Source: Haliotis rubra (taxonomy: Eukaryota). From it: a stretch of 64,000 nt of DNA. The notes beneath the pieces are model-generated. The model was not told the DNA's origin. It saw only the letters and a program-made list of their open reading frames with translations, and did no database searches. Below are positions 3,235 to 59,881 of this stretch, piece by piece (the first letter of the stretch is position 1; every line of letters starts with the position of its first letter). The translations under genes and the position numbers were made by a program. The stretch lies in contig NW_025766736.1 in assembly GCF_003918875.1 (NCBI RefSeq), positions 248,001-312,000 on the forward strand. The letters are read 5' to 3'.

Positions 3235-3427
3235 TCTGTTTGTTGTTTAAAGCTGCATTCAGCAATATTCCAGTTATATCGCGGCGGTCTGTCAATAATC
3301 GTGTGCAGTTGGGATACGATGACATGTGTCAACCAAGTCAGCGAAACGGACTGCCCGATAACGTTAGTCGCCTCTTACGACAAGCATGGGTTGCTGAAGA
3401 TCAATTCTAACCCGGATCTTCAGGGGT
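3235..3427 (-). mobile_element. Retroposon family B copy (internal deletion)
   Basis: Reverse strand starts acccctgaagatccgggttagaattgatcttcagcaacccatgcttgtcgtaagaggcgactaac and ends with the aatattgctga...ttaaacaacaaac tail. Confidence 0.85.
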
Positions 3428-9500: not shown

Positions 9501-9672
9501 ACCCGTGAAGATCCTGGTTAGAATTGGTCTGCTGCAACCCATGTTTGTCGTAAGAGCTGGCTAATGTTCATGATGTTGATCACTGGATTGTCCGGTCCAG
9601 ACCAGATTAAAAACAGGCCGCCGCTAAATAGGTGGAATATTGCTGAGTGCTGCGTTAATTTATAATCAATCA
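9501..9672 (+). mobile_element. Retroposon family B (internal deletion)
   Basis: Starts acccgtgaagatcc; ends ggaatattgctgagtgctgcgttaa. Confidence 0.8.
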
Positions 9673-11645: not shown

Positions 11646-11901
11646 GAGAGTGAGTGAGTGAGTGAGCTGAGTTTTATGCCGCACTCAGCAATATTCCAGC
11701 CATATGGCGGCGGTCTGTAAATAATCGAGTCTGGACCAGACAATCAAGTGACAAACAGCATGAGCATCGATCTGCGCAACTGGGAACCGATGACATGTGT
11801 CAACCAAGTCAGCGAGCCTGACCACCCGATCCCGTTAGTCGCCTCTTACGACAAGCATGGGTTACTGAAGACCAATATTCAAACCCTGACGTTCACGGGT
11901 C
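11646..11901 (-). mobile_element. Full-length retroposon family B with an A-type (TCAC)n tail
   Basis: TSD ggcggtaca at 11637 and 11902 brackets the element and fixes its 5' end at gacccgtgaa. Confidence 0.92.
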
Positions 11902-23111: not shown

Positions 23112-23280
23112 CTGACTGACTGACTGAGTTTGGTTTTACGCCGCTTTTAGCAATATTCCAGCAACATCACGGCGGGGGACACCAGAAATGGGCTTCACAC
23201 ATTGTGCCCATGTGGGGATTCGAACCCAGGTCTTCGGCGTGAAGAGCCAACGTTTTAAACATTAGGCTACACCACCGCCC
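23112..23280 (-). mobile_element. SINE family A
   Basis: 14-bp TSD gataccaatgctga at 23098 and 23281; (TCAG)n tail. Confidence 0.95.
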
Positions 23281-24821: not shown

Positions 24822-24983
24822 CTGACCGAGTTTGGTTTTACGCCGCTTTTAGCAATATTCCAGCAATATCACTGCGGGGGACACCAGAAATGGGCTTCAC
24901 TCATTGTACCCATGTGGGGATTCGAACCCGGGTCTTCGGCGTGACGAGCCAACGCTTTAACCACTAGACTACCCCATCGCCCC
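24822..24983 (-). mobile_element. SINE family A
   Basis: 12-bp TSD ctgtatataaga at 24810 and 24984. Confidence 0.93.
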
Positions 24984-43920: not shown

Positions 43921-46900
43921 AGGAAGGATAACAATATATGTACGGACAACTTCTTTATTACAGTGAGAGTGTGAGTTTCGGTGTAGGCTCTAACATTGTT
44001 ATTAAGCAGCCTACACCGAAATGTCGCCCTCACGGTAATAAAGGAGTTGTTCATCCATATTTTGTTATCCTTCTTTATAACTCGACTAGAGGCTCTAACA
44101 CCGCTATTAAACAGCCTACACCAAAACGTCGCTCTCACGGTAATAAAGAAGTTGTTCATCCATAGATTGTTATCCTTCCTTACAATCTGATCTGGAGGCT
44201 CTAACACCGTTACTAAACAGCCTACAACGTCTCTTTCGCGGTAATAAAGAAGTTGTGCATCCATCTATCGTTATCCTTCTTCTACAACTCGTCTAGAGGC
44301 TCTAACACCGTTAGTAAGCATCCTACACCAAAGTCTCTCTCATCCATCTATCGTTATCCTTCTTAACAACTCGTCTAGAGGCTCTAACACCGATAGTAAG
44401 CCTACACCGAAATGTCGCTCTCACGCCTTCATTTGTAATAAAGAAGTTGTTCATCCATCTATCGTTATCCTTCTTTACAACTCGTCTAGAGGCTCTAACA
44501 CCGATAGTAAGCAGCCTACACCGAAATGTCGCTCTCACGGTAATAAAGAAGTTGTTCATCCATCTATTGTTATCCTTCTTTACAACTCGTCTAGAGGCTC
44601 TAACACCGATAGTAAGCAGCCTACACCGAAATGTCGCTCTCACGGTAATATAGAAGTTGTTCATCCATCTTTTGTTATCCTTCCTATAACTCGTCTAGAG
44701 GCTCTAACACCGATAAGCTACACCGAAATGTCGCTCTCACGGTAATATAGAAGTTGTTCATCCATCTTTTGTTATCCTTCCTTACAACTCGTCTAGAGGC
44801 TCTAACACCGATAGTAAGCAGCCTACACCGAAATGTCGCTCTCACGCTAATAAAGGAGTTGTTCATCCATCTATCGTTACCCTTCTTTACAACTCGTCTA
44901 GAGGCTCTAACACCGATAGTAAGCAGCTTACACCGAAATGTCGCTCTCACGCTAATAAAGGAGTTGTTCATCCATCTATCGTTATCCTTCTTTACAACTC
45001 GTCTAGAGGCTCTAACACCGATAGTAAGCAGCCTACGCCGAAATGTCGCTCTCACGGTAATAAAGAAGTTGTTCATCCATCTATCGTTACCCTTCTTTAC
45101 AACTCGTCTAGAGGCTCTAACACCGATAGTAAGCAGCCTACACCGAAATGTCGCTCTCACGGTAATAAAGAAGTTGTTCATCCATCTATCGTTACCCTTC
45201 CTTACAACTCGTCTAGAGGCTCTAACACCGATAGTAAGCAGCCTACACCGAAACGGCGCTCTCACGCTAATAAAGAAGTTGTTCATCCATCTATCGTTAT
45301 CCTTCTTTACAACTCGTCTAGAGGCTCTAACACCGATAGTAAGCAGCCTATACCGAAATGTCGCTCTCACGGTAATAAAGAAGTTGTTCATCCATCTATC
45401 GTTACCCTTCTTTACAACTCGTCTAGAGGCTCTAACACCGATAGTAACCAGCCTACACCGAAATGGCGCTCTCACGCTAATAAAGGAGTTGTTCATCCAT
45501 CTATCGTTACCCTTCTTTACAACTCGTCTAGAGGCTCTAACACCGATAGTAAGCAGCCTACACCGAAATGTCGCTCTCACGGTAATAAAGAAGTTGTTCA
45601 TCCATCTATCGTTACCCTTCTTTACAACTCGTCTAGAGGCTCTAACACCGATAGTAAGCAGCCTACACCGAAATGTCGCTCTCACGGTAATAAAGGAGTT
45701 GTTCATCCACCTATCGTTACCCTTCTTTACAACTCGTCTAGAGGCTCTAACACCGATAGTAAGCAGCCTACACCGAAATGTCGCTCTCACGGTAATAAAG
45801 GAGTTGTTCATCCACCTATCGTTACCCTTCTTTACAACTCGTCTAGAGGCCCTAACACCGATAGTAACCAGCCTACACCGAAATGTCGCTCTCACGGTAA
45901 TAAAGAAGTTGTTCATCCATCTATCGTTACCCTTCTTTACAACTCGTCTAGAGGCTCTAACACCGATAGTAAGCAGCCTACACCGAAATGTCGCTCTCAC
46001 GGTAATAAAGGAGTTGTTCATCCACCTATCGTTACCCTTCTTTACAACTCGTCTAGAGGCTCTAACACCGATAGTAAGCAGCCTACACCGAAATGTCGCT
46101 CTCACGGTAATAAAGGAGTTGTTCATCCACCTATCGTTTATCCTTCTTTACAACTCGTCTAGAGGCTCTAACACCGATAGTAAGCAGCCTACACCGAAAT
46201 GTCGCTCTCACGGTAATAAAGGAGTTGTTCATCCACCTATCGTTACCCTTCTTTACAACTCGTCTAGAGGCTCTAACACCGATAGTAAGCAGCCTACACC
46301 GAAATGTCGCTCTCACGGTAATAAAGGAGTTGTTCATCCATCTATCGTTATCCTTCTTTACAACTCGTCTAGAGGCTCTAACACCGATAGTAAGCAGCCT
46401 ACACCGAAATGTCGCTCTCACGGTAATAAAGGAGTTGTTCATCCATCTATCGTTATCCTTCTTTACAACTCGACTAGAGGCTCTAACACCGATAGTAAGC
46501 AGCCTACACCGAAATGTCGCTCTCACGGTAATAAAGGAGTTGTTCATCCATCTATCGTTACCCTTCTTTACAACTCGTCTAGAGGCTCTAACACCGATAG
46601 TAAGCAGCCTACACCGAAATGTCGCTCTCACGGTAATAAAGAAGTTGTTCATCCATCTATCGTTACCCTTCTTTACAACTCGTCTAGAGGCTCTAACACC
46701 GATAGTAAGCAGCCTACACCGAAATGTCGCTCTCACGGTAATAAAGGAGTTGTTCATCCATCTATCGTTACCCTTCTTTACAACTCGTCTAGAGGCTCTA
46801 ACACCGATAGTAAGCAGCCTACACCGAAATGTCGCTCTCACGGTAATAAAGGAGTTGTTCATCCATCTATCGTTACCCTTCTTTACAACTCGTCTAGAGG

Positions 46901-47000
46901 CTCTAACACCGATAGTAAGCAGCCTACACCGAAATGTCGCTCTCACGGTAATAAAGGAGTTGTTCATCCATCTATCGTTATCCTTCTTTACAACTCGTCC
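43921..47000. repeat. 105-bp satellite array (about 28 units) preceded by an inverted partial unit
   Basis: Unit ttcatccatctatcgttacccttctttacaactcgtctagaggctctaacaccgatagtaagcagcctacaccgaaatgtcgctctcacggtaataaaggagttg; source of the 268-780 aa repeat ORFs on both strands. Confidence 0.97.
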
Positions 47001-47006
47001 AGATAT

Positions 47007-47118
47007 GGTCCATATCCACAAAGCGAACTAAGCACTACAACAGTCGTAACCCTGTCTAAAATACGGGATTGTTACGATCGTCAAACACCACCGTAATATC
47101 GCTTTGTGAATAATGCCC
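47007..47118. mobile_element. Small hairpin MITE at the right edge of the satellite
   Basis: IR tatccacaaagcga / tcgctttgtgaata. Confidence 0.6.
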
Positions 47119-48383: not shown

Positions 48384-48844
48384 CCACACAAAGTGTGGTA
48401 CTCTTTGTGTACAGGTCTATGTTTCCACACTTTGAAATTGGTAAATCTTTGTTGCTGAGGTATAACTAGCTCGAGAATGCCTGTAACCCATGAAGTTTGC
48501 TGCTGGAGTCGTGCACTCCCTGACTTTGTTTACTAGTAACTATATTTTCTTACTTTGAAAATTTGTAACTCTTTGTTGCCAATATGTAACCAGCCCTAAC
48601 ATGGAGTTGTGCACTCCCTGTGTTTGTATACCTATCTGAAATGAATGAAAATATAAATAAAAAAAACAAACTGTTAGAATGCCGTTCAAATAATCGGAAT
48701 GATCTCGTGATGTGATCAAGAGTGCGTGATGTGATCAACCTGTTTCTGTCGGTGTCCCCATGGGTAGATACACTCCTGATCACAAGAATATACCACAGGA
48801 GGTTTCAATTGCATTGTACCTACTGTAACGATGAATTTGGTTCA

Positions 48845-49135
48845 GTTTGTTTGTTGTTTTACGCCGCACTCAGCAATATTCCAGCTATATGGCGGCGAGT
48901 CTGTACATAATCGAGTCTGGACCAGACAATCCAGCGATCAACAGCATGAGCATCGATCTACGCTATTGGGATACGATGATATGTGTCAACGAAGTCAGCG
49001 AGCCTGACCATCCGATCCCGTTAGTCGCCTCTTACGACAAGCATTGGTTGCTGAAGACCAATTCTAACCCGGATCTTCATGGGAGAGACAGGCATGGGTT
49101 GCTGAAGACCAATTCTAATGAGGATCTTCACGGTT
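48845..49135 (-). mobile_element. Full-length retroposon family B plus a duplicated 5' head (49092-49135)
   Basis: Complete reverse match, followed by a second gcatgggttgctgaagaccaattctaa...gatcttcacgg. Confidence 0.9.
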
Positions 49136-49280
49136 AGTAACGACGCAGATGCAACATCTGCATCAACGACATCCTCGTTAGTCTTGCAGTCTTGAAGCTT
49201 TCGTTTTTACTTTTCAAAAACAGTATATGATGCTGGCTATCAATTATAAGCCGGACCTATCACGGGGTACATACAATGAG

Positions 49281-49525
49281 ACCCGTGAAGATCCGGTTAG
49301 AATGGGTCTTCAGCAACCCATGCTTGTCGTAAGAGGTGACTAACGGGATCGGATGGTCAGGTTCGCTGACTTGGTTGAGACATGTCATCGTATCCAAGTT
49401 GCGTAGATCGATGTTCGTGCTGTTGATCACTGGATTGTCTGGTCCAGACTGGATTATTTACAGACCGCCGCCATATATATGGAATATTGCTGAGTTCGGC
49501 GTAAAACTAAAGTCATTCACTCACA
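49281..49525 (+). mobile_element. Full-length retroposon family B with an A-type tail
   Basis: Starts acccgtgaagatcc; ends ggcgtaaaactaaagtcattcactcac; degenerate TSD tacatacaatgag/tacattcaatgcg. Confidence 0.92.
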
Positions 49526-50259
49526 TACATTCAATGCGTTATAAGTATTGAAGAAAACGTTTGCGAGGAATACAGGATGCCCAAGGAGAATTAAATGAAA
49601 CTGGACCCGCTTCCTCTTCCCGGCAAAGATACTTTTCGGCAAGTACACCACTCACTTCCCTAAAGATCATGAATGCATTGTGTTAAAACATTGTTACGAA
49701 AATAAGCTTAATTGGAACCTTTGTAAATGCTAGTTTACACACTGGGGAGAAATTAATATTTATGCCTGTCAGAAGATATCCATTGACATCATCTGTTATT
49801 TAATTTACCATTGCTTTCGGTGTAGACTCAACATCGCAGCATACTTATAAGAAAAATACCTTCTTTTCAATTTGTGTGTCCTTGTTAATATTTTATAAAG
49901 ACCGTCCACCAAATAATTGAATTTAGCAAAACCCAGACAGAGATAATTAAATAACTTGCTTACATGAAACACAAGAATGATGAAGGGTTCACACGCAAGT
50001 TGGTGAATTGTTTCAATCAACGCCAGGTAACTCACATGAACAATAGGTGGCAAGTAATTAAGCATACAGGGCTTTTAGTTGAAGACTCGGTCCGGTTCAA
50101 TATACAAACTAGTTCATTAATTATCACATTTCGGTGTTTGTAGCCACCGCATGTCTTTCTGCAAAATGCCATTTCATTTGAATATTGATTGGTAGTTTTT
50201 AACTGTTCAGCGATGTACATGTACAACCTGATCTCGAAGAACAGTCCCAGAAAGGCTAA

Positions 50260-50950
50260 ATAGTATTAAACGTTGACTGATATATATATATTGTCAGTAG
50301 TTGATAGACTGGACTGAATCAGCGGTACATTAGTATGGATTGTATCAAACGTTGACTTGTATAGAGCATATTAAACGTTGACTTATATAGATTATGTTTA
50401 ACGTTTACCTGTTTAGATTGAATAAAATGTTGACCAGTGTAGATCGATATAATCAGCAGTTGATTAGTATAGATTGTATCAAAGGCAGACCTGTATAGAT
50501 TGTATCAAACGTTGACTTGTTTAGAGCATATTAAACGTTGACTAGTATAGATACTGTCAGTAGTTGACTAGTAAATATTGTATAAAATGTTGACGAGTAT
50601 AGACTTTATCAGTAGTTGACTATAATACATTGTATCAAACGTTAACTTGTATAGATTATATTAAACGTTAACTTGTATAGACTTTATCAAATATTGACTA
50701 GTATAGATATTATCAGTAGTTGACTAGTATATATTGTATGAAAGGTTGAGGAGTCTAGATTTTTTTTTCAAACGTTGACTAGCATAGATTTTATACAGGA
50801 CAAAAATAGTTAGGGATATATGTACATTTTGAAATTATGAATTATGATCTATTTATTCATTGACACACTGATAAAATATCAATCATAAAAATACCAATAT
50901 CCCTAACTTATTTTGTCCAGTATATTAAATGTTGACTATTGTAGATTCCA
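50260..50950. repeat. Degenerate minisatellite of about 26-28 bp
   Basis: Recurrent tagattgtatcaaacgttgact(t/a)gta. Confidence 0.75.
50794..50922 (+). mobile_element. Tc1/mariner-type MITE, copy 1
   Basis: TIR tacaggacaaaaatagttagggata / tatccctaacttattttgtccagta in TA context. Confidence 0.8.
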
Positions 50951-51674
50951 GACTAAACCGGGGATGTATTTACCATATTCAGTTTTTATCATGCATTTAT
51001 TTAATAACAGTCTTTGACCCTTTAGGCTACAAAAATATGAGACACTTGTTTTTAACTTTTTATGTACATATCGTCAACTCTGATGATGATGATGAATCTT
51101 ACGATAGAGGTAGTTGGTGTAAACTACCAGGCCAAGGAAGGTATACACGTGACAATTCACACTTTACCAAACATATTTCTGTTCTGTGACGTGGGTCCAG
51201 TGTCCTTGTGACGTCATGCCCACGTCACCTGAGCGAAACATTCATTCATATGATGCACGTAATATCACCTATGATACGTCACCATGGAATACCCCCCTTT
51301 GTTTACCTTATTTTCAGCCACCATCACACGCGAGTGTATGTTTTCTTAAAGCCTGGCAGCCTGTTTGTCAAAATAACATCTCCACTTTCAAAATCAAGTT
51401 ATCTTGTTTCTGTATTTTATTAATCATCTAGGCTTTTTTTATCAAAACAAGAAACGTATTCACACAAGTTGATATCTACATTCCAGGAACTACTTACTCT
51501 GAGTAGACGTTTATGCAACATAACTGCACACTTGTTCAGATCTAACACTGGTGCTTTATATGCAGATTGGCCAACTTGCATGAGAAACTGTATTAATCCT
51601 TTGTCAGAAACTTCAGTTAGCTATATCAAAGTTAAAACCAGTTAACACATATGGCATTCTTCCCTACAAAGTTA

Positions 51675-51885
51675 ACCTGTGAAGATCCGGGTTATAATTG
51701 GTCTCCAGACCCCCATGCTTGTCGTAAGAGGCAACTAACGGGATCGGGTGGTCAGACTCGCTGACTTGGTTGACACATGTCATCGTATCCAAGCTGTGTA
51801 GATGTATGCCCATGCTGTTGATCACTGGATTGTCTGGTCCAGATTCGATTATTTACAGACCGCTGCCGTATAGCTGGAATATTGC
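51675..51885 (+). mobile_element. Retroposon family B
   Basis: acctgtgaagatccgggtt...gctggaatattgct. Confidence 0.88.
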
Positions 51886-52556
51886 TTCCAAGTGTGATGC
51901 CTTAACTTGTACCCCATACCTCAGTATATCCATTTTGAGCATGGAAGGGAAATATGCACGCCACCAGCTTCAAACAAAACATAATGGAGTCAGTTTGCAA
52001 TGGAAACAAGAAGGTAAACTCCTCTTTAAGAACGATCCCATCTGATTCAGTTCAATATTTAATTCTCAACATAACCCAACACTATTTCTAATTAACTTTG
52101 GCAAACATTAATTTGATTAATAATCTGGTAGTGTATAGAATAATAATGAATTGAGGGTAAAGATATCTGTTGTGGATTACAGCTTCAGAAAAAGATTACA
52201 GATTGCATATTTTCGGTCCACTACCCTTTCATAACTGTTTAGCGTTGTGTTCTAAACTCGGAACAGAAGGTATTATTTGCACTAATTTGTTTTATGTGTT
52301 TGTCTATTTCAAGCACCAGCAAACAAAAGCGTTGTGTCGACTGAAGTAGGGCAGTGTGCCGAGGTGGACTTGTCAATAAGACTCATAAGGAATCTGTGAT
52401 TGATTAATACAAATATGTATATTTCTATCGAACACCCAGATTCTTTATTATCGACACACTGCTGTACGATAAGATGCATACAAAAGTGCTGATACGTGTA
52501 TTTCCTTCTGTAATAATGGCACCGTATGAATAAACCAGGTTGAATTTATGGTTATA

Positions 52557-52685
52557 TGCTGGGCAAAATAAGTTAGGGATATTGGTATTTTTATTATTGA
52601 TATTTTATCAGTGTGACAATGAATAAATAGATCATTATTCATAATTTTAAACTTTGCACATATCCCTAACTATTTTTGTCCAGTA
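52557..52685 (-). mobile_element. Tc1/mariner-type MITE, copy 2 (inverted relative to copy 1)
   Basis: Reverse-complement match to 50794-50922, including the interior. Confidence 0.8.
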
Positions 52686-52920
52686 TATATTCAATGGGGA
52701 TCATGACAACGCAGATGAGTGAGTATGGTTTTACATAGACTAACAACTAATATTTGAAATGAACATATTTTACAGAGAAAACAGTTCATAATAAAATTAA
52801 ATAAAATATAATGAAAAGGAGCCCTGAGACTTTCTTCATTTTCTGAAACTGTGAAAATCTAGACTTGCCTCATATTCTAGATTTGCATGTGATTTCTTGG
52901 ATAGGGTCTGTATTGACAGA

Positions 52921-53022
52921 CTAGGTTTACGCAGCTTTAAGCTTCATACATTGTACCTATGTGGGAAATCGAACCCGGGTCTTCAGCGTGACGCTTTAAC
53001 CATTAGGATACCCAACCGCCCC
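52921..53022 (-). mobile_element. SINE family A, deleted copy
   Basis: cattgtacctatgtggg...gaacccgggtcttc...cgctttaacc. Confidence 0.75.
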
Positions 53023-53210
53023 TAAGCGTACTATAAGTTCATAACATTTTATTTCAACGGTAAGACCTTGTCTTGGAATGTATTACTATTTAACAGTTCC
53101 GTGGAAGATATAACGATAACGTAGCAGTTTTTGGGTGACGTGGAATGTTCTAGAATAGCAAAGATCAATGTACGGAGCATTTTAGGCCATGTAAGGGAGC
53201 AAGCGCTCAC

Positions 53211-53450
53211 ACCCGTGAAGATCCGGGTTTCAATTGATCTTCAGTAACTTATGCTTGTCGTAAGGGGCGACTAACGGGATCGGGTGGTCAGGCTCGCTGG
53301 CTTGGTTGACACATGTCATCATATCCCAATTGCGTAGATCGATGCTCATGCTGTTGATCACTGGATTGTCCGGTCCAGACTCGATTATTTACAGACCGCC
53401 GCCATATAGCTGGGATATTACGACGTTAAACAACCAACCAACCAACCAAC
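53211..53450 (+). mobile_element. Full-length retroposon family B
   Basis: acccgtgaagatccgggtt...gttaaacaaccaaccaacc. Confidence 0.92.
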
Positions 53451-55859
53451 TCTTATCTCACATTACATTAAGACTAGCGATTGTTAGAAGATAATTTTCC
53501 TTAACCCTAGATAACCCCAGGTCTAGTTTGGAAGCTTGACCATCGATATTTCATCTTGAAAAATATATATATATACATTGTAATTGCAATACGCACAAAG
53601 AAATCGCATTATAATGACAGTCAACAATCATTACACCCTTTCTTCTGGGGAATGTTTTACGTTCATATATTACAAATTATATTATGTAATGATTCTGAAA
53701 TGTAGTTCAAAACACAGTTTCGTTATGTTATGATACAATTACACAAATACAAGTAAATATTGCTCTATACAGTAAATGGATGTAAGAGCTTATTTATGCA
53801 TGACTTACTTCAAGACATACAGCAGGTCCGTTATCTAATGATGCAATTACACAACTAACTGTAAATATGGCAAATACACAGATCCGCCTATCTATACATA
53901 GCTCTGGTGTGTAAACATTCTGCCGTACGGTTTGTTTCAGAATAAAAACATGGATCCTAAACCGCTTTGTCCCGACTCGGGATACCAATAAATATTGCAT
54001 GTTAAACATGTAAAATGTATGCGAGTAATAGTACCAGAACAAATATAATGTTCATCGAATTTCGTAACGAGCTAATTTTCAGAATTATTTTGGTACCGTC
54101 TATTCAGTAATTCACAATTATATTCCCTCATTCTAAACTAATAAAAAGTATGATTGATTATATGACGCATGTTTGTGTGTTTAGCGATGAACGTGTCTAG
54201 ATTTCTGAAGAAATGATACCCGAAGAAATGAAGTATGCATTCCCGCTGTATCTCCTCAGTAAGACAATATCTTTGTATTCCACAAATTAGAAGGTGTTGT
54301 CAGGCAAGCCCATTTGCGTTATTATGATACAGAGATAGTCTATCTCCACCCTCAGGAAAGAGGTTATAAAATATTCATGTTTTCAAATGTCGAAATGCGA
54401 TTGTTCTTGCTATAAATAAGTTGAGCTATCGGTTAACTAAAATATGAAACCAGTAAAATCAATACTTTCAAGGCAGTGGGTGTTCTCATTTAATTATATA
54501 TTCATAAATTCATTTTAATTGTTGTCGCATACGATAGAAAGCTACTCTTGCTGTGATATACAACAGTTAAATATGTGATGGGATAATACAAGTACAATTG
54601 TACTACCCTGATAACAAACACTGACTGCGACTACAAGATCGTCATCGTCATCACACTCGGCGTCTTGCCGCAACAACATCCTTACCAGTGAGCGTTCAAC
54701 GTTCGAGCAAAATCATTGAAAAAACAAATCACGATCATTGTATATGAATAATAAGTATACTCATGCCAATAATGGTTGTCACCCCTCCCCACCCCAACCC
54801 CACCCCTCTCCAATAAAAATATTGAAGGGGTGACAACCATTATTGGCATGAGTATATATCAAAATATTATATCTATTTTGATCAATAAATATCAGTTTAG
54901 ACATAGTATGTATATCTCGACGTCGATAATGAAATTGAAATAATTGGTATATTAATAAAAAAACTGATGGTATCAATGAAGTTTTTACACAATGTCTCAA
55001 TGTTATAAACATCTTTTACTTGACGTATATTTCGACTGGAAATGGTAACTAGGAACCAGATAGTGGAGTATAGCCCCCTAACCCCTGTTCTTGAAGGATT
55101 ACATTTTACGTTCATGATCATACTCATTTGGTTGATGTTTGTGCCCTTCTGTGTGGTTCCATCACGTGAGGCGTCACGTGACAAGTGGCGTCTCGTCTCC
55201 TGTTGCTCGTCGTATCCACGTCAGCTCTTGTCAAGCGACATGTTTGTTGAACTGTGTTATAGTCATTTGACCAAAGGAGGAGGATGATCGGCCTTGTGAC
55301 CAGGCTACGACAATCGATCAGAAATTTACAACGTCAACGTGTATGTACTGCATGGTAAATCATGAAATAAATGGGGAAAACGATACGGTGCGATGTTCGC
55401 GTTGCTAAAGTAACGCATCTGTGTCTTGGCTTACTGAAGGTTTTTGACACGTAAGATTCACGGGGCGGGAAACAAGGCCTGTGCCATTAAGCCTATACTT
55501 TTCATCATTACGGAATGGGAAAAACAACGTGTCTTGTTATAAAAAAAACATGAATATGTTTTTATTAATTGATCTGATTGGATATTACCATTGAGCCAAT
55601 GCCCGACATTCACAGTTGAAAAATTATTGAAGTACCTTGTATTGTCAGTAGCTTCTGTGGTGTAGTGGACAAACCGGCTGTCCAGTGGAAGGTCAGTGGT
55701 TCGACCCCGTCCGTGCCATGACGAAAAAATTTTTAAAAATTGGAACGTGACGTTCAAGTTCACCTTCATGTTGTTTGACGCCGCACTCAATACATAAGTG
55801 CACTAAGCAATATCTGTAATATTCAAGCTAAAGGATGGCAACTTATAAGTAACCCAACC

Positions 55860-56201: not shown

Positions 56202-56447
56202 ACCCGTGAACATCCGGGTTAAACGTTGGTCTTCAACAACCCATGTTCGTCGTAAGAGACGACTAACGGGATCGGGTGGTCAGGCTCGCTGACTTGGTTG
56301 ACACATGTCATCGTATTTCAAATGCGTAGATCGATGCTCATGCCTTTGATCACTGGACTGTCTGGTTCAGACTCGATTATTTACAGACCGCCGCCATATA
56401 GCTGGAATAATGCTGAGTGCGACGTTAAACAACATCCAACCAACCAA
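56202..56447 (+). mobile_element. Full-length retroposon family B
   Basis: acccgtgaacatccgggtt...gacgttaaacaacatccaaccaacc. Confidence 0.92.
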
Positions 56448-57342: not shown

Positions 57343-57511
57343 CTGACTGACTGGCTGAGTTTAGTTTTACACCGCTTTTTGCAATATTCAAGCAATATCA
57401 CGGCGGGGGACACCAGAAATGGGCTTAACACATTGTGCCCATGTGGGGAATCGAACCCCGGTCTTCGGCGTGACGAGCCAACGCTTTAACCACTGGGCTA
57501 CCCCACCGCCC
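57343..57511 (-). mobile_element. SINE family A
   Basis: 12-bp TSD gttgccagtcga at 57331 and 57512. Confidence 0.95.
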
Positions 57512-58855: not shown

Positions 58856-59037
58856 GGGCGGTGGGCTAGCCCAGTGGTTAAGGCGTTAGCTCGTCACGCT
58901 GATGACCCGGGTTCGATTCCCCACATGGGGTTCGCACGATGTGTGAAGCTCATTTCTGGTGTGCCCTGCCGTGATATTGCTGGATTATTGCTAAAAAGGC
59001 GTAAAACCCAACTCACTCACTCACTCACTCATTCATT
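58856..59037 (+). mobile_element. SINE family A
   Basis: Consensus match with a (TCAC)n tail. Confidence 0.9.
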
Positions 59038-59737: not shown

Positions 59738-59881
59738 ATAGTGAGTGTTTTAAATGCGTCTAAACTTGTGATGCGAAGTATATATTCAGAGACTAAGCGT
59801 TAGTCTGTGCGTGCCTGTTCGCCACCTCTTACGACAAGCACAGATTGCTGAAGACAAAGTCTAACCCGGATCTTCACGGGG
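59060..59881 (-). mobile_element. Family B relic in two pieces (3' part about 59060-59210, 5' head 59820-59881), separated by unrelated DNA with TA/CA/TC microsatellites
   Basis: Head: cctcttacgacaagc...gctgaagac...ctaacccggatcttcacggg. Body: gcggtctgtaaacaatc...aatccagcgattgac. Confidence 0.6.

Follow-up and report, generated by a model that had tools for sequence, protein, structure and literature searches.

The head of an abundant Haliotis rubra SINE: a LINE-leader module with a conserved RNA fold and a probable role as Pol II promoter

SINEs are defined by Pol III heads, and a short retroposon of the abalone Haliotis rubra raises the question of what stands in the place of such a head at its 5' end. 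We studied the copy that begins at position 53211 of a 64-kb stretch of the genome (the window, in what follows). A sequence-only reading of this DNA had described a family of about ten copies starting with a four-way-junction RNA with a kissing loop, and had proposed that it was an unclassified ribozyme or another structured 5' element. The 53211 copy is full-length (53211-53450, + strand), with head, body and (AACC)n-type tail delimited by BLAST and by alignment of the window copies.

A BLAST search with 53111-53470 as query detected a repeat of about 210-260 bp with 22 copies or fragments in the window, many matches starting at query base 100-102, which corresponds to 53211, and in the alignment the similarity between window copies is absent 5' of this position. 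The starting sequence ACCCGTGAAGATCC, with two mismatches at most, occurs 11 times in the 64-kb window vs 0.19 occurrences expected by chance, and all ten copies to which the sequence-only reading had assigned a common start were confirmed. Heads of other full copies were located by BLAST among the window copies at 49281-49349 (+) and 51675-51744 (+), and are also found at 49015-49084 (-), preceded by a partial tandem head at 49086-49129, at 56202-56272 (+) and at 11829-11900 (-). The last of these has a verified target site duplication (TSD) and one untemplated G before A1. Internally deleted copies carry heads at 3358-3427 (-) and 9501-9568 (+), and a head-only copy lies at 59812-59881 (-), followed by sequence with no further occurrence in the genome. 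We considered whether this copy (59880(-)) stands for a second family with the same head, and rejected the idea because its body is found only once in the genome. Partial tandem duplications of the head directly 5' of full heads were seen in the window (49086-49129, -) and at two other loci of the genome (L015 and L033:6626-6818). Just 5' of the 53211 copy, at 52880-53040, there is a different high-copy repeat with very deep contig coverage in all four runs.

Searching the genome (1.38 Gb in 2855 contigs), we obtained more than 5000 candidate copies in the first search. A sample of 357 kb was then composed of the window, 29 hit loci and 20 random 10-kb loci, in which 72 of the 94 head matches start at model position 1-3 and 73 of the 117 whole-element matches start within the first 10 bases. 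The random loci contain 28 heads in 200 kb, that is, about 140 heads per Mb, from which a copy number of about 190,000 is extrapolated. The SINE is about 240 bp long with a sharp start at ACCCGTGAAGATCC, and Logan contigs from four organisms diverge, as loose ends, exactly at 53211 and at 49083/49084, their coverage of 48800-53500 being limited to repeats. TSDs of 10-16 bp, detected in 25 copies, adjoin the 5' end in many of the genomic copies, reaching the first A in, for example, L006, L017, L018, L019 and L022. The TSD of the 11900(-) window copy, which had been put forward as marking the true 5' end, is real, with CTGTACCGCC flanking both ends. Two tail types were found: (ACTC)n, preceded by AAAACTAAAC (also given as ...AAAACTAAACTCAC), and (AACC/AACA)n; an ACTAAA hexamer is present upstream of the tail repeats. 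No LINE ORF was found in the window or in the 357-kb sample, and the sample gave no tail-only LINE ends. The window also has long overlapping ORFs on both strands at 44684-47096 (up to 780 aa), with low-complexity Pfam matches only and a strong GC skew, a region that looks like a tandem-repeat block and not a gene. An inverted-repeat element of the Haliotis rubra genome (L036:2216-2282, +, and 2473-2544, -) has about 35 nt in common with the head (the P2 3' strand, P3 and the 5' half of P4, as defined below) and nothing else.

Such an element fits the LP-SINEs (LINE-promoter SINEs) described by Matetovici et al. (2016, Genome Biol Evol 8:253; PMC4758252) in Littorina, Haliotis, oysters and scallops. 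These have TSD flanks, a tandem-repeat tail, preceded in Haliotis and Ostrea by an ACTAAA or AATATA hexamer, and a head of about 70 bp with homology to LINE 5' ends, namely those of Nimb-17_LMi, I-3_DR and RTE-9_CPB (PMC4758252). Like Lsa_2, Hdi_LP/Hmi_LP, Oco/Oed_LP and Sgl_LP, the 53211 family is short and non-autonomous, has flanking TSDs whose length varies (10-16 bp in 25 copies), ends in short tandem repeats after the poly(A)-signal-like hexamer ACTAAA, and starts with a non-tRNA head of about 70 bp in common with the 5' ends of autonomous LINEs, in our case L056, L107/L108, L109, L112 and, in reduced form, L110. The likeness to Hdi_LP, Nimb-17_LMi, I-3_DR and RTE-9_CPB is one of description and not of sequence alignment. 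The element type is thus known since 2016, and the novelty that had been claimed for it falls, as SINEs with such a LINE-derived head of about 70 bp were already described in Haliotis (PMC4758252). What was not described there is the conserved RNA fold of the head. The text of PMC4758252 gives no RNA fold for the LP head; its authors proposed the head as a LINE promoter, mentioning ribozyme activity by analogy with L1Tc only, and described it as common to several LINE clades, including Nimb (I-like) LINEs. A full-text literature search returned no match to strings of the head sequence. To that paper our study adds the copy number, two types of tail and the untemplated G.

The absence of a Pol III head or of tRNA or 5S similarity, stated in the sequence-only reading, was upheld: ARAGORN and Rfam, the latter at gathering and E-value thresholds, found no tRNA, 5S or other RNA family in the head, and neither a small-RNA-gene head nor the pair of A and B boxes of Pol III-type SINEs is present. 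We regard as highly improbable that a tRNA-derived Pol III head has decayed here, leaving GGTTAGAATTG as the remnant of its B box. When read from the consensus, 8 of 11 positions at nt 16-26 do match the B-box consensus; however, the A box is absent, the motif lies at +16 and not near +52, and the tRNA models of ARAGORN and Rfam have no match. Moreover, other lineages read AACAAGAAUAG or CUAAGAAUAG at the homologous stretch, therefore the GTTCGA core is not conserved, and the module belongs to LINE leaders, whose homologues already contradict a tRNA origin. Elsewhere in the window, four stretches gave tRNA-like Rfam matches (57443-57501, -; 24910-24978, -; 58867-58923, +; 23205-23276, -), one of them at gathering with 30.2 bits and none called by ARAGORN; a distinct SINE family with tRNA-derived heads is their probable source.

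To find the module outside the abalone, metagenome contigs were scanned with 21 nt of the head core, which returned eight loci (L051-L058). L056 is a complete single-ORF LINE of 3.3 kb, whose ORF of 1021 aa carries Exo_endo_phos and RVT_1 domains, with the module at 71-138 and the AUG at 140. L051/L052, L054/L055 and L053 are short elements, and L053 has an upstream flank unlike that of the others immediately before the module; these contigs presumably come from termite-gut metagenomes, to judge by the sample ids, and "termite" is used here as a label only. L057 is a SINE copy of the abalone type. When the L056 ORF served as protein query, hundreds of similar LINE contigs (3.2-3.6 kb) were obtained, eleven of which were retrieved, and a covariance model built from abalone heads only (R1) detected the module in unselected relatives (L107, L108, L109 and L112, with a reduced form in L110). 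The contig of L108 begins at module nt 1 and its ORF starts at 80; in all module-bearing LINEs that were read, the module either stops 3-4 nt short of the AUG or runs into it. Since the module reaches to the AUG, it is the entire 5' leader of these single-ORF APE+RT (RTE-like) LINEs in metagenomes. In this sense, the idea of a LINE-derived structured 5' module in place of a Pol III head was sustained by R1, and the search for the module on autonomous LINEs, which had been advised, succeeded with RTE-like ones.

Relatives of the L056 clade in the abalone genome are distant only, with at most 38% identity over the RT, therefore the abalone SINE must have another partner LINE. A partner outside this clade is consistent with a head common to several LINE clades (PMC4758252). 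The module followed by the GAAGGCAA hairpin was not found in the abalone genome, where a single match looks like chance, and degenerate pattern scans of bacterial and archaeal genomes and of viral contigs gave chance-level matches only, none of them module-like.

Some other features of the metagenome contigs are described here in their own right. L056 holds a 28-nt duplication at 27-82, similar to the tandem head duplications of the abalone, and L058 (340-1020, -) consists of tandem 74-nt module units in two clusters on a 1.1-kb contig, with the same sequence of about 60 nt preceding each cluster. Directly behind the leader there is a second conserved RNA hairpin (L056:147-176, L109:262-292, L111:115-142, and L113-L116), both where the called ORF covers it and where it does not; the 17-nt hairpin loop AAGGCAACGGGAAACCA does not vary, and the stem covaries (GGGG/CCCC, CGAAG/CUUCG, GAGG/CCUC, GCGG/CCGC). 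In L116, a partial match to metazoan SRP (7SL) RNA (113-197; 40.5 bits, E = 3e-7) is situated upstream of the LINE ORF.

How is the module folded? In the 53211 copy it spans 53211-53280 (+) and scores 95.5 bits against R1. The 5' C-run CCCGU (53212-53216) can form the 5' strand of P1 with the strand ACGGG at 53274-53278, a pairing with covariation, and the latter strand could otherwise be the partner of loop L3. Hairpin P2 (53217-53242), also with covariation, consists of GAAGAUC, a 12-nt loop that holds a G-run and an AGAAU-like motif, and GAUCUUC. It is followed by hairpin P3 (53243-53255; AGUA/UGCU), recognised by RNAfold and in an alignment of 94 matches to R1 (A5), whose loop L3 reads ACUUA in this copy and ACCCA in the consensus, and by hairpin P4 (53257-53271; GUCGU-AAGGG-GCGAC, then UA), the nearly invariant core of the module. 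For main-family copies RNAfold gave exactly the P1-P4 four-way junction previously proposed, with modest z values of -1.6 to -2.0, and in this junction P1 and P2 make a 12-bp coaxial stack.

Covariation was evaluated in A5, an alignment fitted to the structure and so biased towards it, where 90.6% of cells are paired (87.6% in shuffled controls), 15 pairs have changes on both sides (6.8 shuffled) and 46 cells have changes on both sides (10.5 shuffled), the last value being reached by 0 of 500 shuffles; slid controls were 4-8 times lower. The signal is located in P1 and P2. All 7 pairs of P2 are changed on both sides somewhere in A5: within the abalone it reads GAAGAUC/GGUCUUC, or GAAGGU/ACCUUC in a subfamily, and pair 11-28 appears as A-U, G.U and G-C, whilst elsewhere P2 is ACAGGGU/GCCCUGU (L056 and L109), CUGCAG/CUGCAG (L112) or GAGGAGC/GCUACUC (L058). 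P1 is CCCGU/ACGGG in the abalone; L051 has CCGU/AUGG and its close relative L054 has CCAC/GUGG, and in the LINE versions P1 is weak or missing. Variation in P3 is confined to the 5' strand. The P4 hairpin is identical in every unselected LINE leader recovered by R1 except L110, where GCUGU/GCAGC replaces GUCGU/GCGAC with two compensated pairs, the sole compensatory variant of P4; the UAA that follows is invariant as well. In the loci of the metagenome scan the exact 21-nt match was imposed by the search pattern. Single-stranded AGAAU, AAGAG and UAA are invariant motifs. In summary, P2 covaries strongly, P1 in some lineages and P4 in one reduced LINE form. The variants cited in the sequence-only reading (GAUCUUC, AGUA, and AACA/UGUU in P3 with GUCGU/ACGAC in P4 at 56202) are all present, and from its fold the hairpins P2, P3 and P4 and the compensatory changes of P2 and P1 stand. 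The kissing loop is not supported across lineages.

That kiss was proposed between the loops L2 and L3, which are indeed complementary in the abalone consensus. We compared the long-range pairings by swapping partners among eight lineages (20000 swaps), a small sample that yields leads and not proof. For L2-L3 the A5 counts are weak and the own-lineage score is no better than the cross-lineage one, as 6567 of 20000 swaps were as good; the kiss thus lacks lineage-specific support. For L3 with the 3' strand, a lineage-specific pairing, the score was 3.44 within lineages vs 2.72 across them, with 57 of 20000 swaps as good, the pairs being GUCCA/UGGAU in the termite-labelled group, GCCA/UGGU in L108 and L109, CCG/CGG in L112 and GGCUG/CAGUC in L058, whose two partners are unrelated to those of other lineages yet pair with each other. 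The 5' C-run pairs with the L2 G-run in every lineage (ACCCG/CGGGU, UCCCG/CGGGA, UCCC/GGGA, CCCC/GGGG, GCCC/GGGC), and 1148 of 20000 swaps were as good. In the 53211 copy this strand, S1a, comprises A53211 and the C-run at 53212-53216 (+), and its alternative partner is the CGGGU at 53224-53228, complementarity being kept in all lineages. Together with P2, the pairing makes an H-type pseudoknot with loops of 1-2, 0-1 and 7 nt. Two C-rich and two G-rich segments can form either the junction plus a kiss or two pseudoknots, and because P1 covaries on its own, the four-way junction and the double pseudoknot may both exist. The swap scores are leads to a double pseudoknot as alternative to the four-way junction, one that the LINE versions favour.

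Does this RNA cut itself? A self-cleaving ribozyme, of a new class or a rearranged HDV-like one, would act on read-through transcripts, cutting them immediately upstream of nt 1 and thereby setting the 5' end of the LINE and SINE RNA; the module does begin at the first nucleotide of SINEs and LINEs alike. Two sister LINEs that lack the module, L111 (10-106) and L114 (about 195-300), have probable HDV-like ribozymes at its place. By reading, their P1, P2 and P4 covary (P1 GCCUGC/GCAGGU and P2 GUCCAC/GUGGAC in L111; P1 CCUCCA/UGGGGG and P2 GACCC/GGGUC in L114), L3 is CUCUUCG or CUCAAUG and J4/2 is GCGAA, and L111 gave a weak, sub-threshold Rfam match to drz-Agam-1 (22.5 bits, E = 2.5). The shared position suggests, by analogy, that the module may be functionally equivalent to a ribozyme, and the GUGG(A/U)C-AU that precedes the shared hairpin suggests that it might even be homologous to the HDV-like ribozymes of the sister LINEs. 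Self-cleavage would also agree with the twister variants at the same place in Perere-3, of the RTE clade, where TSDs lie next to the cut (PMC8501958), with the invariance of single-stranded AGAAU, AAGAG and UAA, and with the strand order of S1 and P2, which is that of HDV P1 and P2, an extra G before A1 being able to close S1 with a G.U.

Against this, Rfam models of HDV, CPEB3, drz-Agam, twister, hatchet, pistol and hammerhead ribozymes have no match to the module at E values up to 5-10, and the HDV-like nested double pseudoknot is not formed, as there are 8-10 nt between the P1-like strands without inner P3/P4, and no P3/L3 or P4 stands between the P1-like and P2-like strands. The catalytic C conserved in J4/2 is missing from the corresponding stretch of the abalone head, the 3' half of L2 (UUAGAAUU), and likewise from L058 and L108. 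Of the hammerhead core (CUGANGA, GAAA), the head consensus has no CUGA, and of the twister features (L4 CCCAAGC, L1 UAA, T1/T2; table in PMC8501958) it has only ACCCA in L3, with no Rfam match to either class. By hand, the module was not mappable onto HDV-like, twister or hammerhead architectures. HDV and hammerhead cores are absent, as the sequence-only reading had stated; no known ribozyme class fits, and Rfam gave no family for the module, either in the window and the head or in the metagenome and LINE loci. The untemplated G found in about half of the insertions, presented below, fits a capped and not a 5'-OH template, and comes close to the capped ends that the same reading had named as an argument against cleavage. 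In view of both results, a self-cleaving module seems unlikely.

The strongest argument on the origin of the template RNA comes from the 5' junctions. Immediately before A1, 28 of 57 full-length copies (49%) have a G, vs a background of 19.7% (p = 6e-7), with no G enrichment at positions -2 and -3, and in truncated copies this base is G in 1 of 14. Among the 25 copies with a TSD of at least 10 bp, 9 TSDs abut A1 directly and 8 are separated from it by exactly one extra G that is absent from the downstream TSD copy; the other extras are T (two copies), AG (two), GG, GT, CTA and CCA (one each), so that G accounts for 8 of 10 single extra bases. In full-length L1 and SVA insertions, untemplated 5'-end guanosines are taken to be copied from the m7G cap (PMC4859970). 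If the same rule holds here, the SINE template RNA would be capped, and capping would in turn imply Pol II initiation at A1, in agreement with the promoter proposal of 2016 (PMC4758252) and against a 5'-OH cleavage product. By this analogy, capped Pol II transcription is more likely than self-cleavage as the source of the SINE RNA.

Another explanation of the same base could be that the G is the element-encoded first base, often lost, closing with a G.U a 6-bp 5' helix (GACCCG/CGGGUU), as at the cleavage site of HDV-like ribozymes. Developed further, it would place the LP head in a new class of processing RNAs at the 5' terminus: a double pseudoknot would have taken over from HDV-like ribozymes in a lineage of RTE-like LINEs, would have been passed to Nimb LINEs and SINEs in several phyla, and would cut itself or direct a cut at nt 1, with the G before A1 encoded; we consider this scenario improbable. 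We hold equally doubtful that the module is an RNA handle only, which would bind the LINE protein or the ribosome or protect the end, transcription coming from neighbouring promoters and the 5' end being set by another nuclease (e.g., an RNase P-like one acting on the cloverleaf-like junction). The covariation, which shows selection on the fold, the vicinity of the module to the start codon in LINEs and the 12-bp coaxial stack of P1 and P2 in the four-way junction are all in line with a handle; nevertheless, a cut end is uncapped and would leave the excess of untemplated G unexplained, the tRNA models do not match the head, and P1 is weak or absent in the LINE versions.

We therefore favour, with a probability of about 0.6, that the head is the LINE-leader module of an LP-SINE, acting as DNA as a Pol II promoter and having as RNA a conserved functional fold that is not a ribozyme. 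The 53211 head would belong to an LP-SINE, a non-autonomous retroposon that a LINE mobilises, and some 70-75 nt at the start of this element would be copied from the 5' leader module of certain LINEs and not from a small-RNA gene. As DNA, the module may provide an internal promoter for RNA polymerase II and so fix the start at A1; the resulting RNA would be capped, and about half of the insertions would hold a copy of the cap in the form of an extra G. As RNA, the fold of the module may serve a post-transcriptional step of the LINE cycle that the SINE exploits, candidate roles being that of a leader at the start codon, assembly of an RNP with the LINE protein, or stability. The conserved fold and the HDV-like ribozymes at the same site of sister LINEs both argue that the module is an RNA device and not promoter DNA alone.

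In terms of known promoters, neither an Inr-like start nor a DPE at +28 to +32 was recognised in the head consensus, which starts with ACCCG and has UCUUC at positions 28-32, where a DPE would read RGWYV, and another promoter architecture is possible. In the internal Pol II promoters of the I, jockey, F and Doc LINEs, downstream sequence sets the start at element nt 1. The start at nt 1 is common to them and to the module proposed here, whereas their Inr/DPE is not recognisable in the 53211 head, and these promoters are not known to depend on an RNA fold.

A SINE with about 2 x 10^5 copies built on a LINE leader constitutes the best available material for the transcription question, and its fold is conserved from abalone SINEs to metagenome elements of other hosts and RTE-like LINEs. 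The choice between promoter and ribozyme left by the paper of 2016 can now be tested directly with a 75-nt RNA, and the cap-like extra G provides a first answer, favouring Pol II.

Two groups of LINE 5' modules are the closest to this one. Pr77/L1TcRz of the trypanosomatid elements L1Tc, ingi and NARTc is a 5' module of about 77 nt that combines an internal promoter with an RNA fold (PMC3383444, PMC3185411). Like the LP head, it is a 5'-terminal module common to LINEs and their short non-autonomous partners; however, L1TcRz is a bona fide HDV-like ribozyme, whereas the LP head has no HDV core and no match to the HDV model. The second group comprises the 5'-terminal HDV-like ribozymes of R2 and RTE elements and the twister variants of Perere-3 (PMC3774820, PMC8501958), which, as the module does, occupy the 5' terminus as pseudoknotted RNAs of 70-80 nt directly before the ORF of single-ORF APE+RT LINEs. 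Unlike them, the module has neither catalytic-core features nor an Rfam match, and its insertions carry a cap-like extra G.
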